Positions 30,608-36,400 of a stretch of 64,000 nt of DNA are shown here, one piece after another. The stretch comes from Hyphochytrium catenoides (Eukaryota; Protista; Hyphochytriomycota). The notes under the pieces were generated by a model, which did no database searches, was not told the DNA's origin, and saw only the letters and a list, made by a program, of their open reading frames with translations. The stretch lies in the NCBI GenBank assembly GCA_900088475.1, contig FLMG01002864.1, positions 1 through 64,000 on the forward strand, read 5' to 3'. How positions within the stretch are numbered: the stretch's first letter is position 1; the number at the start of each line of letters is the position of its first letter. The position numbers were made by a program, and so were the translations under genes.

Positions 30608-33600
30608 TTAATCATCCTCAATATCGGTGGACCTCCTGAAGCTTTCCTCAGGCTCCTTCAACGATACAGAATCAGGGACGGCACCGAGAGGAAAGTACTC
30701 ATGTTCGATACATCCGTAGAAGACCTTGAAGATCCGAAAGCCCTATCAATCCCGAGGCAGAAAGTGCGTTAGAGGCAGGAGAGTTTGATGTATTGAAGTG
30801 TGCTAGTTAGTCTTTGAAAGTAAAAAGACTAACAATGGATCCGAGGTAAAAGGACTTGAAGGACACTGTAAACTAGCTGCAGACAGGAGGAGAGGCCGTA
30901 GTGGGTTACATCTACCGGCTGTCTGTCCAAGTTGGAGCCGCAGGCAGCCCCAGTGGTCACCATATCCACAGCTGCTAGAGGACCTTCATCTGCATCTTCA
31001 ACTCTCCTGGGCCTGGGGAGCTCTCGGGCTGGGACGCGTCCTTCTGAGTTGCGGAGAGCGTGGCCGGCAAGGAGGGCTTTGGCCTTCAATTGTTGCAGCA
31101 GGTCCATGGTTATACCTCGCTCCTAAGAACAGACCCATTCAATATATCAAGACCAAAGGCACGTACACAGGGACGGTGCCTGAGGTGGTTACCTCTGGGG
31201 GAATGTTTAGCGAACCAGCAGGAGTGTGAACCGCGTTTTCGCTCTCGGGTTCCTCGCCCGGAAACATAACTGGCTCCTCACTGTCCTTGAGGAACCAGGG
31301 GTGGTGTCTACGTGCAGAGGGTACATTTCAAAGTCCAGGAAGAAAATCATCGTGGAGTACTATAGAGTGGACCACCAAGCGCTCTTAGTAGAGAAGTGAA
31401 AGTGCGAGACGCCCCACTTTGCACTTATGCAAGAGGGAAAGGTGGGGACCACGGAGCCATGAAGAGGATGTAGGCCCTACTCCGAACAGAATCAAGACTA
31501 GGAGAGAAAAGTGATAAACATATCGACAGGAAGAAACGGAGGTGAAGGAGGCGTCGACTCACCCCGCGACGATTATATGTTGAGAGCCGACTTTAGCAAT
31601 CTCCAGTTCACGTCTGAGCCACTCTAAGTGCAAGCATCAGCTAGCCTACTCTCTTTTCATGAAAGAGGTCATAATCCTACCGCTCTGTCTGGCACGTTTA
31701 TGTTCCGTCTTTTTCTGATAGATGAATAGCGATGTATTCAGCACTAAGAGACAGAGGCCCTGGAACCTGGCAAGCCGGTTAGCTTTTAAAGTGAAGTATG
31801 GACATGTTTGCGTCACAAGAAGGGAGAGCAATAAGACACGAGTGAGAAAGACGCAGCCAAACAGGAGACAGATCCAAACCAATATAAACTCCAGGATGAT
31901 GGGGAAGACCAAGAGCCAGATCATGTATGCCAGCTAGACGAAGAGTTAAGAGAAACTCTAATCGCAAGGAACAGGAAACAGTGATCTAGACCATGTATGT
32001 GCTGAGCAACAACCCTGAAGAGGAAGAAGAACAGTCGGCCTTACCAGAAGCAAAAATAATCGTCGCCATACCAATCCCTGTATGCCTCGAGGCCCTCTTC
32101 AGTGAGACCCGAGCCACTAGCCCCAATGTCCTGATCTCCACAAGCGAACAGCTGAAGAAGCGAAATGAAAAAGGGAAGACTTAACGAGTCCTGGAACTAA
32201 TGGACTTCCCCGTTCACCATGTCTACAGCCGTACCATGGGTATGGTCTCAGAGATGTTGCACATGACCCTTCTGACTTTCTCTGCCTTTTCCTTAACGTC
32301 CAGTGATTAGTGGCGCCTGCAAAGGTGAAGGACATACATTAAAAGTACCTGATGACTGGCGTGCTTGGGATCGACATTGGTCAAATCCCCAGTTATGAGT
32401 ACAAAGCTTGGCCTCAAACGGTTAACATGAGCCACGGTCTGGGCCAAAAGCGATTCATCTTCTGCCGTCGCACCGAATTGGATGTCTGATATCTTTTAGC
32501 ATCATAACAAAATAATCAGTTCAAGGGTGAGGCCATTTCTCTATCTAGACCACTTTTATGGCGTTCTGGAAGATCACTCGTACCGCCAGTCAAAGATTTC
32601 CCTAATCAATCTCTCAGCATCAAGTCACTGAATTAGAGCTTTGGACATGCCTGAATGAAGAAAAACGGCTTCTCCTTCCATCCTATCTGATTACTCATCG
32701 TAAAGGGCGGATATCTCCTATTGCGTGTCCGCTGGAAGCGCCAACGAAGAGGGTCCTCGTGAAAAAGCTGAGCCACCACTATCAGAGGCATGCCACGGGC
32801 ATCAGCAAACCATTGGCCTTCTCCTTTTTCATATCCTTCTACTAAGGGCCGGTCTTACAACCTACTCACCTGGAAGGTGGAGGATGTTATGCCTCTCTAA
32901 CAGGTGGAGTACTTCGTTTCGTTCTCTTGGACCCAAGTTGCTTAAAGCGCCCGGCATAAAGTTGAATTGGCCATCCTCATCAGGTACTGACGGGGACTTG
33001 GCCGCTGCATACTCTCGGATCCGAGTCACGAGCTTCCTGACGCGGAGATAAGACTCTGATGGCTCCGGCGGTCCTTCCAACATTCTCTGCCTCCAATCTA
33101 CGCCTTTGAAAAAAGGATGTGCTGAAAATGTATCCAACATGTCGATTAGCAATTAACAGCTTTCTTGGGACCATTAGATTGGACCCAGAGGCGGCACTAC
33201 CTAAGATCGAGGTCATATCGTCATCCAGGCCCAATCTATCCGAGATGTTCCTGGCAAGCAAGCCCATTATTATGCTTTTCGCCTCTTCAGAAAAGTGGGA
33301 AGGCAGATCGTCGGTCGTCAGGCCCTGCTTAGCCTTGAGCATGGTCGTATATACTCCACTGGTTTTGAAGGGAGGAAATCCATCTAAGAGCTGATAGAAT
33401 GGAGAGAGTATCAGAGTCCGCTATACCCTAGTAGATCCACCAGTTCACTTGTTCCCTTTTCCCTATTAATCTCTTTCTGCTTCCATCAAAGTTTGCTTCC
33501 ATCGCTTTGTAGCGGCGGGGAGCACTCCACACACTTGGATACGATGTATCTATTCTAGGTTCCTCTCTATCCTGCCTGATCAGCTCCTTATTCGGTGGGT

Positions 33601-34818
33601 CCTACCTGAAAAATAATGTTCCCTAAAGCCCATGCATCTGCGTCGTACGATACATTCTTGGAGTCAATTGTCTCTGGCGACATGTACTCCGGCGTCCCTT
33701 AGTTCCACCCTTTGTTAGTTATCTACCAAGAGAGGCTAGTTAATGGCCCAACCGCTGGCTAAAGAAGAATCAACTCACCGACAAAGTTGGGCCCGTTTAA
33801 AGAGGCATCTCGCAAATCTTTTGCCGTGCCAAAGTCTATCAGTTTGAGATGGCCATCCCTCCCAATTACCATGTTCTCAGGCTTTAGATCTCTTCGGTAC
33901 ATTCACGGTTAGCAGGTGGGGAAAGAAGTAATGAGTTAAAAGGTAGGAAGGAGGTAGGGAGGACAAAGTAGTGAAACGGAAGCGAAAAACAAGGAGGGCA
34001 GAGAGAGAAAAGTGAGCGAGGCCACCGGCATCCGATGCCAAGTGTTAGACAGACGTTATTTTTCACTTCTTGGACATAGGGGTAGGCCATGTCAGACGCA
34101 GTGTTACCTATGAACTATTCCTTTCGAGCGTAAGTAGAGCAACGCCTGCACAATATCTGCCGCATAGAACTGAGCCAACCTCTCCCCGCAACCCACAGGG
34201 ACACCATCGTCCAACAAGCGCTCCCATAAGTCCCCTCCACCAGGATATTCCATTAGATAGTATAGACTTTCTGCATCCTGTGAAGACGGTGTGTGTGTTA
34301 GGAGTCAGGGGCCAGTCTCATTCACTAGACGGAGACATTCCCCTAGCAGACTACGTTACCTGGAAAGTGCTATACAGTTGGATGATGAATGGACTCTCCA
34401 ACTTATTTAGCACTTGCTTCTCCATAAGAAGCTCATTATGTAGATTCTTATGGCGGATCTTCAGCCGTGAGACTGTCCTTTTGTCAACCACTTTCAGGGC
34501 AAATTCTTCTCCACTCTTCTTGTGGATTGCATACTGTACTTGGGAACAGTTTCCCTAAGCCAAATATATGAATGTTAACGATCAAGAAGTACTATTCCTG
34601 CGGATAATGACAGAGTAGAGTTTTTCTAGACCTTACCGTGCCCAGGACCTTGCGAAGGTCAAATTCCTTGAGGAGCGGCTTCCTAGTTTTGTTCTTCACT
34701 GCAAGCAGAAGATGTTTCTGAGTACTAAGCATCCACACGGAAAAAACGAGGCCCCCATACCGCTTTCTATGTCATCGTCCGCAGGAGGGCTTGCAGAGGC
34801 ACCTGACTGTAGAGTCAT
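30608..34818 (-). CDS. PDK1-like AGC kinase fused to a CPPED1-like calcineurin-type metallophosphoesterase domain (17 exons)
   Basis: Kinase: LGT|GNCSQV, FALKVVDK, HR|DLKPEN, KLIDFGTAK, FV|GTPEYMSPE, DAWALG and HPFFKGVDW. The linker exon HLP|VVAQLFHEDP continues in frame into PFFFIQ|ISDIQFG, ITGDLTN, IPM|LFACGDQDIG, YGDDYFCFW, LVLNTSL, WLRREL, AG|HHPWF, LAGHALRN and GFRIFKV...IEHEYFPL. Stop TAA at 30608-30610. Confidence 0.85.
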
Positions 34819-35489
34819 GACCACTTTCCTCTGTACCTTGGGGCCTTTACTTCCCAGAGGTGTATCAGGTTCCTCGATACCACTTCCTCTGTATCTTTAA
34901 GCCTTTACTGCTTGGATGCGTATCAGGTTCCTTAGTGTCTTTGGTTCATTTCTTGAAGGCTAGAGGGCTGCTAATGGCTGGCCTTGGAGCTAACGACGGG
35001 ATGACGAAGCCTAAGCCAGAGCTGCATCCGGCGCAGCTGGCGTCTGGACTGTTGAAGCTAATTCTGAAGATTGCATCAATACGAAGCGGCACATATGTGA
35101 TAATCATCACTAAAACCGATACATTGATTCTTTTGTGGATGTTGTTCAAAATATAGCTCAGGCCTATCAACAATAGTCGGATCTGGGGAAAGATTCATAG
35201 ATCTCCACAAGTGGTAAGTTACGGTGCCGCACTCCTTTAGCTAGTCAGAGAGACAACAATTGAAAGAAACCTCAGCTTTCGTTGTATCTTTCATTGCGTT
35301 CTTTCTGATTGTTACGTGGAAGAACGGCAGCGCAGCAGAAGAAAAGGAAAGATCCTCCCCTCACATTCTCAGCCTTCAAATAGAGCCTTCTTTCTGATCT
35401 TCAACAGTACGGCGCCGCTCATTCTGCAATCTCCGCGAAGCTCCAGACAGTCTCTTCCAAGGATAACTGGACGGTCGCCTTCAAGAAAC

Positions 35490-36400
35490 ATGAGGTTCTT
35501 CAGTAGCATCGCCGTCATAGCGGCGCTGGTGGTAGCGATTTGTACTGCGCCAGCTGATGCAAAGAAGAAAGGCCCCAAAATTACCCATAAGGTCTATTTC
35601 GATGTCTCCATTGGAGGCAAGGATGCTGGTAAACGTCCTTATTGCTCTACACGCTTTAAGAGCTACCTTTGGGACTAAACGAGAACTCCCCCCTTCAGGA
35701 CGTATCGTCATGGGGCTTTACGGCAATACCGTGCCCAAAACTACCGAGAACTTCCGTGCTCTGTGCACTGGTGAAAAGGGACTTGGCAAGTCCGGCAAGC
35801 CTCTGCACTACCAAGGCAGCAAGTTCCACAGGGTCATTCCTGACTTTATGATTCAAGGCGTAAGACTATTTCAGTGAAACATCTAGGCCTGTACGAACCA
35901 CTTACCCTGTCCTGCAGGGTGACTTCACACACGGCAATGGCATGGGTGGCGAGAGCATCTACGGCGAAAAGTTTGAGGACGAGAACTTTAAGCTGTGAGG
36001 CGATCACCACACCTTTAATGCTCACTGCGCCTCTCTCACATGTTTGTCTCTCTTCTTTCCAGCAAGCACAAGGAGCCTGGTCTTCTCAGCATGGCAAACG
36101 CTGGAAAGAACACGAACGGCAGCCAGTTCTTCATCACAACTGTCAAAACCCCTTGGTTGGATGGTGGGTCTCTATGATCTTCTCTCTATCTTAGTCAAGA
36201 GTGGCACTACAAACTCTTAAATTTGCTAATCCGTAGGCCGCCACGTCGTCTTCGGCAAGGTTCTTGAGGGCATGGACGTGGTCAAAGCCATTGAGGCCGT
36301 GGGCACTGGTAGCGGCTCTCCCACGCAGGAAGTAGTGATCAAGAAGAGTGGAGAGCTTATGGATGAAGTACCGGAGGAAGGCGCTAAGCAGGACCTATAG
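35490..36400 (+). CDS. Secretory-pathway cyclophilin (peptidyl-prolyl isomerase, CypB-like), 5 exons
   Basis: Signal peptide [24 protein letters not shown], then [37 protein letters not shown]|[21 protein letters not shown] and WLD|GRHVVFGKV. The C-terminus is KQDL. Confidence 0.97.

Follow-up and report, generated by a model that had tools for sequence, protein, structure and literature searches.

Here, we report a metallophosphoesterase domain of the CPPED1 type that has lost three residues otherwise invariant in its family. It is encoded in a window of 64,000 nucleotides (nt), the whole stretch of DNA that was analysed, from Hyphochytrium catenoides (assembly GCA_900088475.1, contig FLMG01002864.1, positions 1 to 64,000). 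A gene of 17 exons on the minus strand extends from an ATG at 34818 to a TAA at 30608 and gives a 744-amino-acid (aa) model, in which exons 1-8 (32870..34818) encode a protein kinase and exons 9-17 a complete CPPED1-like metallophosphoesterase domain, of the class III phosphodiesterase type, of about 330 C-terminal residues. The reading that we favour, with some reserve, is that a catalytically dead or crippled CPPED1-like domain has been kept as a non-catalytic module.

Family and catalytic motifs

Local phmmer comparisons of the joined exons 9-17 gave E-values of 1e-48 to planctomycete open reading frames (ORFs) and of 5.6e-51 (166 bits) to the relative P0021, and the joined domain scored 170 + 22 bits against a family hidden Markov model (HMM). 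Relatives were sought first by scanning bacterial genomes for DNA encoding G-D-D-Y-F-x-F-W, which returned about 25 planctomycete ORFs of about 320 aa each. The planctomycete relatives pass the cut-off of the Pfam Metallophos model (PF00149) and are named 'Ser/Thr-protein phosphatase CPPED1' in UniRef and JGI, and the closest solved structure to the bacterial relatives is that of Rv0805, with GD, GNHD, HHP and GHxH aligned. Three word-indexed searches starting from bacterial and long relatives produced a set of 289 relatives from planctomycetes, diatoms, MMETSP and EukProt protists, animals and one plant, which were aligned to the family HMM. CPPED1 itself is defined by the signature D...GD...GNH[D/E]...H...GHxH and has Mn2+-dependent activity on AKT1 Ser473 (PMC8366450). 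A PDB search with exon 12 gave no match, and a six-frame Pfam Metallophos scan of the genome returned 44 other matches and missed the kinase-phosphoesterase locus. Several planctomycete ORFs (L014, L049, L070 and others) have hydrophobic, signal-peptide-like N-termini at the position taken by the kinase in the window's copy, and these relatives are therefore probably exported enzymes.

Two motifs of the signature are altered in the window's protein. An initial annotation of the locus had read motif III as GDQD in place of GNHD near 32130; the motif is located at 32139-32128 in exon 12 (codons GGA GAT CAG GAC), and GNH[D/E] is the form in 289 of 289 relatives, GDQD being found in this protein only. 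The change of GHxH to GHAL in motif V, placed near 31055, was likewise borne out at 31065-31054 in exon 16 (codons GGC CAC GCT CTC), where each of the 285 relatives with coverage of the site has the family form and GHAL is again found in this protein only. Alignment with CPPED1 and orthologous fusions had been put forward as a check on whether the substitutions are conserved; they are shared by 0 of the 289 relatives, among which no orthologous fusion was identified. Motifs I (DIQ) and II (GDLTN) had correctly been described as kept; both are the normal forms of the family and not degenerations, so that the deviant motifs are III and V only. Motif II is GDL[TV][N/H/D] throughout the family. 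For motif I, nearly the whole family has D-x-Q instead of the canonical D-x-H, and active CPPED1-type enzymes are thus already without one classical first-metal His.

Of the 13 columns that are strictly invariant in the alignment, 10 are unchanged: the Asp in motif I, Gly-Asp in motif II, the Gly in motif III, the His in motif IV, Gly-His in motif V, and a further Gly, Pro and Arg. The other three (N to D, H to Q and H to L) are all found at the metal/phosphate centre. One metal site is nearly complete, its candidate ligands being the GD Asp, Asp514, the HHP His and His652. An error of assembly is unlikely, because no fewer than five separate base changes, spread over two exons some 1 kb from each other, are needed to arrive at GDQD and GHAL. 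Each phosphoesterase exon is matched once, and in order, by the family HMM, and no canonical GNHD or GHxH was found in the other frames of the locus, introns and flanks included, which excludes alternative 'active' exons hidden in the introns.

The effect of such changes can be judged from mutagenesis of homologues. Asn97 of Rv0805 coordinates Mn, and its N97A variant has no catalytic activity and a lower metal occupancy (PMC3776917); His98 of the same enzyme contacts the phosphate (PMC5113202). In yeast Dbr1, about 5% of activity is left in N85D, H86Q shows 26% activity on the activated substrate bis(p-nitrophenyl) phosphate (bis-pNPP) and is null on the natural substrate, the general acid being lost, and activity is abolished by whatever residue takes the place of His231 or His233, which form the GHxH pair (PMC5113202). 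All three kinds of change studied in Dbr1 are united in the window's protein, and a first-metal ligand has become a non-coordinating Leu. The suspicion that its catalytic centre is degenerate is thus upheld by the loss of three invariant residues and by Dbr1 and Rv0805 mutants in which such changes cripple or abolish catalysis. Since each change is crippling in homologues, we infer loss or near-loss of activity, and this analogy gives good support to a domain that is dead as a catalyst or badly impaired.

In the mechanism that we propose, the Asn binding the second metal is replaced by Asp, the phosphate-contacting general-acid His by Gln, and the GHxH His binding the first metal by Leu. The domain would be folded and would hydrolyse ordinary phosphoesters not at all or very poorly, and one metal or a phosphate group may still be held. 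It would owe its retention to a role other than catalysis, most probably as part of one polypeptide with the active AGC kinase upstream, and could serve to bind a phosphorylated partner or to keep the kinase in one particular state. The role of a phospho-ligand sensor or docking module that regulates the kinase, put forward in the initial annotation, is for now a conjecture.

Probable junction with the kinase

The kinase frame ends with ...H-L-P at a perfect CAG/GTGAGT donor at 32869, and if left unspliced it meets a TAG at 32864-32862 two codons on (...HLPGE-stop). The phosphoesterase frame opens directly after this donor and contains seven in-frame AG acceptors, which would give introns of 28, 31, 34, 46, 49, 52 or 91 nt. 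The 91-nt junction intron (32779..32869, minus strand) fits the other introns of the gene and the mean of 208 bp in H. catenoides (PMC5795050), and a CTGAT branch-like site was recognized by eye about 23 nt upstream of its acceptor. On these splice signals the kinase and the phosphoesterase are quite likely to form one polypeptide.

A comparable fusion was not encountered elsewhere. The kinase half matched 0 of 264 fetched relatives, and in two protein searches windowed for long proteins (37 and 145 found) a kinase domain was present in none among the matches listed. P0135 was considered as a fusion relative and rejected, its phosphoesterase being N-terminal and a kinase lacking. In the literature searched on oomycete kinomes and phosphatomes or on Blastocystis no kinase-Metallophos fusion is reported, nor is a Metallophos accessory domain in the kinome of P. 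infestans; the kinase-phosphatase fusions described from oomycetes join a Ser/Thr kinase to PP2C (PMC10925823). CPPED1-like domains are found joined to other partners, namely a GNAT acetyltransferase in the EukProt transcripts P0144 and P0147, ABC/AAA-type ATPase domains in P0164 (Nitzschia, 1145 aa), and glycosidase-like, GDPD, D-aminopeptidase and PF22244 domains in the bacterial proteins P0038, P0059 and P0121-P0141, and no kinase is among these partners.

The kinase

Pfam Pkinase matches exons 3, 4 and 5. The kinase had been described as keeping its Lys, HRD and DFG, and all three are present in the exon model: Lys61 (in ALKVV) at 34494-34492, HRD161 from 34112, interrupted by intron 4, and DFG181 (in DFGTAK) at 33836-33828. 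A tail of about 75 aa follows the kinase domain. Exon-level PDB matches include PKA, RSK/S6K, PKC, PKG, AKT, ROCK and PDK1, and one C-lobe exon matched PLK4 only; assignment to the AGC group of protein kinases is supported by these similarities. DFGTAK is typical of PDK1, and a 'PDK1-like' label would derive from this motif only, so that the subfamily is here left unassigned.

The activation loop reads N-F-V-G-T-P-E-Y-M-S-P-E (aa 197-208, 33800-33779 and 33697-33670, minus strand). Its first residue, Asn197, occupies the position that is Ser/Thr in the AGC consensus S/T-F-x-G-T and that is Ser241 in human PDK1. With Asn at the phospho-acceptor position, the kinase may not need, or may not allow, phosphorylation of its activation loop.

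Evolution and origin of the domain

All nine phosphoesterase exons are in frame and free of stops and indels. Insertions of 3, 17 and 19 residues are confined to loop positions of the relatives, and the core hydrophobic and glycine positions of the domain are retained, as are 27 of 36 near-invariant residues. The terminal branch of the domain is 3-7 times the family median, and 9 of 37 near-invariant columns differ in the window's protein (relatives: median 0, maximum 5). We read the domain, from this pattern of residues, as fast-evolving but maintained.

Searches of its own genome (61 Mb) with exons 10 and 12 returned the locus itself only, with no paralogue and no canonical CPPED1 copy. An exhaustive representative search with exon 12 (36 aa) gave 0 matches at E<=1e-3, self included, a result that excludes close orthologues only because the query is too short below about 60% identity. 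A metagenome scan with exon 16 gave 600 pattern matches, none of which was a relative.

The domain scored 158-166 bits against planctomycete-type proteins, and 52-112 bits against diatom, MMETSP, choanoflagellate-type and animal members, and its HHP and GDLTN forms are common to it and the planctomycete type. The tree places it on the bacterial-type side of the split with a Shimodaira-Hasegawa-like approximate likelihood ratio test (SH-aLRT) support of 96. A constraint to the eukaryote side costs 1.6 log-likelihood units only and is not rejected by the approximately unbiased (AU) test (p = 0.43), and a bacterial (planctomycete) origin by transfer is for this reason not claimed. The domain may have been acquired from bacteria long ago and later have gained introns and been fused, which is a lead and not a result.

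Exon coordinates and neighbouring gene

The region is without long bacterial-style ORFs, and its minus strand is made up of short coding blocks between GT-AG introns. The 17 exons contain no stops or frameshifts; donors are GT in 15 of the 16 introns and GC in one, and intron lengths are 57-278 nt, bar one doubtful intron of 28 nt. We take the locus for a genuine nuclear gene, intact, in the genome of an intron-rich stramenopile. Its 16 introns compare with a genome-wide mean of 3.64 per gene in H. catenoides (PMC5795050).

The kinase half, defined by the GT-AG exon model, Pfam Pkinase and the exon-level PDB matches, consists of exons 1-4 (34818-34761, 34698-34637, 34554-34360 and 34277-34108) and exons 5-8 (33891-33779, 33697-33606, 33390-33201 and 33121-32870), all on the minus strand, as are the exons and intron that follow. 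Exon 9 (32651..32841, or 32778-32651 if the 91-nt intron is used) encodes a linker and the N-terminal strand of the phosphoesterase; in the alignment with bacterial relatives it carries the family-conserved R-F-x4-N-R-x-[FY] and W-x2-P-F-F-F-x-Q, and its ORF corresponds to positions 32-63 of the family HMM. Intron 9 (32493..32650, 158 nt) has the GC donor CAG/gcatgt and the acceptor ...aaaag. The GC-AG splice joins FFFIQ to ISDIQFG without a gap against every aligned relative, and this gap-free homology across the junction confirms it. Exon 10 (32349..32492) contains D-I-Q of motif I at 32486-32478 and G-D-L-T-N of motif II at 32390-32376, and is the only exon with a (weak) Pfam Metallophos match; it scores 39.9 bits with the family HMM. 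Exon 11 (32235..32291) encodes a short connecting helix. Exon 12 (32045..32151) holds the degenerate motif III, written above, followed by the conserved YGDDYFxFW stretch; an apparent in-frame stop after FCFW was rejected, being the donor of intron 12.

The core strand LLVLNTS and the next loop are encoded by exon 13 (31681..31766). Exon 14 (31563..31623) ends with the Gly preceding motif IV, so that G-HHP straddles the junction with exon 15 (31193..31307), which contains the retained H-H-P at 31306-31298 and the 17-residue insertion unique to this protein. Exon 16 (30916..31122) contains the degenerate motif V (G-H-Y-H in the family), after which R-N is retained, and the 19-residue insertion directly 3' of that motif. 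Exon 17 (30608..30742) encodes the C-terminal strands GFRIFKV...HEYFPL...VP..VSL, corresponding to family HMM positions 290-321, and ends with the TAA at 30610-30608. In local alignment, exons 9-17 are collinear with the relatives from the R-F-x4-N-R-x-F stretch to the C-terminal strands without gaps at the junctions, which validates the exon model.

On the plus strand, an ORF at 35316-35678 has a signal-peptide-like stretch followed by a cyclophilin-type start containing GG. This ORF is probably exon 1 of a gene for a secreted or endoplasmic reticulum (ER) cyclophilin B-like protein, divergent to the kinase gene and about 500 nt from the kinase ATG.

Discussion

Several observations weigh against a maintained, non-catalytic module. 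The terminal branch of the domain is the longest in the family (2.41 vs a median of 0.35 under LG+C20, 1.1 vs 0.32 under LG+G4), and six non-catalytic near-invariant columns also differ, so that the catalytic losses could reflect general relaxation and not a specific switch. No orthologue or paralogue was found in protein collections, metagenomes or the genome itself. The exon 8/9 junction is predicted from splice signals, and expression is presumed. Finally, an Asp in place of Asn can still bind metal, and Dbr1 H86Q keeps its 26% on an activated substrate, so residual or altered activity is possible. The branch length, the nine near-invariant differences against a maximum of five in relatives, the missing orthologue and the odd splice features (the GC donor and the doubtful 28-nt intron) would all suit a phosphoesterase part that is a decaying remnant, a set of unexpressed pseudo-exons or an artefact of the model, in each case without function. 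We nevertheless regard this as very unlikely, since the nine exons are in frame and align end to end with the relatives, gaps are found in loops only and core residues are kept; at least one change per site without a nonsense or frameshift mutation would be very improbable under neutrality.

A domain that is an enzyme of altered chemistry, whether mononuclear or differently metallated with Asp514 strengthening one site, acting on an activated or unusual substrate or endowed with a new activity, seems to us distinctly unlikely. Three invariant residues are changed together and a first-metal ligand is now Leu, Dbr1 tolerates no substitution of a GHxH His, and not one of the 289 relatives shows even one of the changes. 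This stands against some points in its favour: four plausible ligands are left at the nearly complete metal site, motif V is still followed by Arg-Asn, the motif I His is already Gln in nearly all CPPED1-like members, and some active family members, such as YfcE, are without the motif III His. The residual activities of Dbr1 H86Q (26%) and N85D (5%) on bis-pNPP point the same way (PMC5113202). The fusion, too, has an alternative, in which two adjacent genes or a bicistronic transcript would yield a kinase that stops at HLPGE and a phosphoesterase that starts at the ATG at 32791-32789 and acts in trans or independently. The kinase TAG is indeed followed, 70 nt on, by this first possible phosphoesterase ATG, in frame and immediately ahead of the part that has homology to the bacterial proteins; each product would then comprise a whole domain, and the absence of the kinase from the fetched relatives would be expected. 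But the kinase frame ends at a perfect donor, the frame that comes next offers the seven acceptors, and 70 nt would be too small for a terminator and a promoter at a gene spacing of roughly 3 kb, and we hold two separate products to be unlikely.

If the domain is a non-catalytic module fused to the kinase, it might serve as a built-in phospho-substrate trap that recruits phosphorylated AGC-kinase substrates or senses a phospho-ligand. This idea, suggested by the action of human CPPED1 on the phosphorylated AKT Ser473 hydrophobic motif and by the docking of PDK1-type kinases on such motifs, is highly speculative and we give it little credence. Were it true, CPPED1 and PDK1 signalling would be tied together by a natural 'Rosetta stone', and the CPPED1 family would have its first pseudophosphatase. 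Pseudophosphatases are established as regulators in the tyrosine-phosphatase and PP2C families, and we know of none in the CPPED1-like branch of the calcineurin-like fold. What is found here is a natural triple loss, attached to an apparently active AGC kinase, in the hyphochytrids, which are sister to the oomycetes. Provided that fusion and expression are real, it would constitute a natural experiment on the CPPED1 fold without catalysis and a hint of a functional link between CPPED1 and AGC/PDK1 kinases, known in animals only in trans (AKT Ser473). A domain in simple decay would make the case an ordinary one.

Compared with the CPPED1-like family, the domain is shared end to end, identity being 36-40% with the bacterial type and 28-32% with members from animals, choanoflagellates and diatoms, and D-x-Q in motif I, GDLTN, HHP, PFFFxQ and GDDYFxFW are held in common. 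Relatives such as P0002 and L014:6520-7491:- have GNHD and GHYH, whereas the window's domain has GDQD and GHAL and two extra loop insertions of 17 and 19 residues. The relatives stand alone or after a signal peptide, whereas the window's domain is placed after a kinase. Human CPPED1 is an Mn2+-dependent phosphatase of AKT1 Ser473 and PAK4 (PMC8366450), an activity that would be unexpected here. Rv0805, the class III cyclic-nucleotide phosphodiesterase of M. tuberculosis (PDB 2HY1, 3IB7) in which the roles of the residues were defined, is remote from the bacterial CPPED1-like proteins (E about 1e-5) and is an active binuclear enzyme; its inactive N97A form was engineered, whereas the window's protein is naturally altered at the same Asn and at two more residues. 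PDK1 is among the exon-level matches of the kinase and the top match for no exon, and it has a C-terminal PH domain, whereas the window's kinase is without a PH domain and has the phosphoesterase in its place.

Vps29 of the retromer and the B subunits of DNA polymerases alpha, delta and epsilon are inactive calcineurin-like folds that serve as scaffold or binding modules. Like the domain described here they have a metallophosphoesterase fold that lacks metal-binding or catalytic residues, but they belong to other families and are ancient and universal, whereas the loss in the window is lineage-restricted, CPPED1-like and attached to a kinase. The kinase-PP2C fusions of the oomycetes, a sister lineage within the Pseudofungi, unite a kinase with a phosphatase-type domain on a single polypeptide, as the window's gene probably does; their phosphatase has the PP2C (PPM) fold and is described as active, whereas the fold in the window is calcineurin-like and its catalytic centre degenerate. 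The protein would combine a pseudoenzyme in the calcineurin-like fold with a kinase-phosphatase-type fusion.

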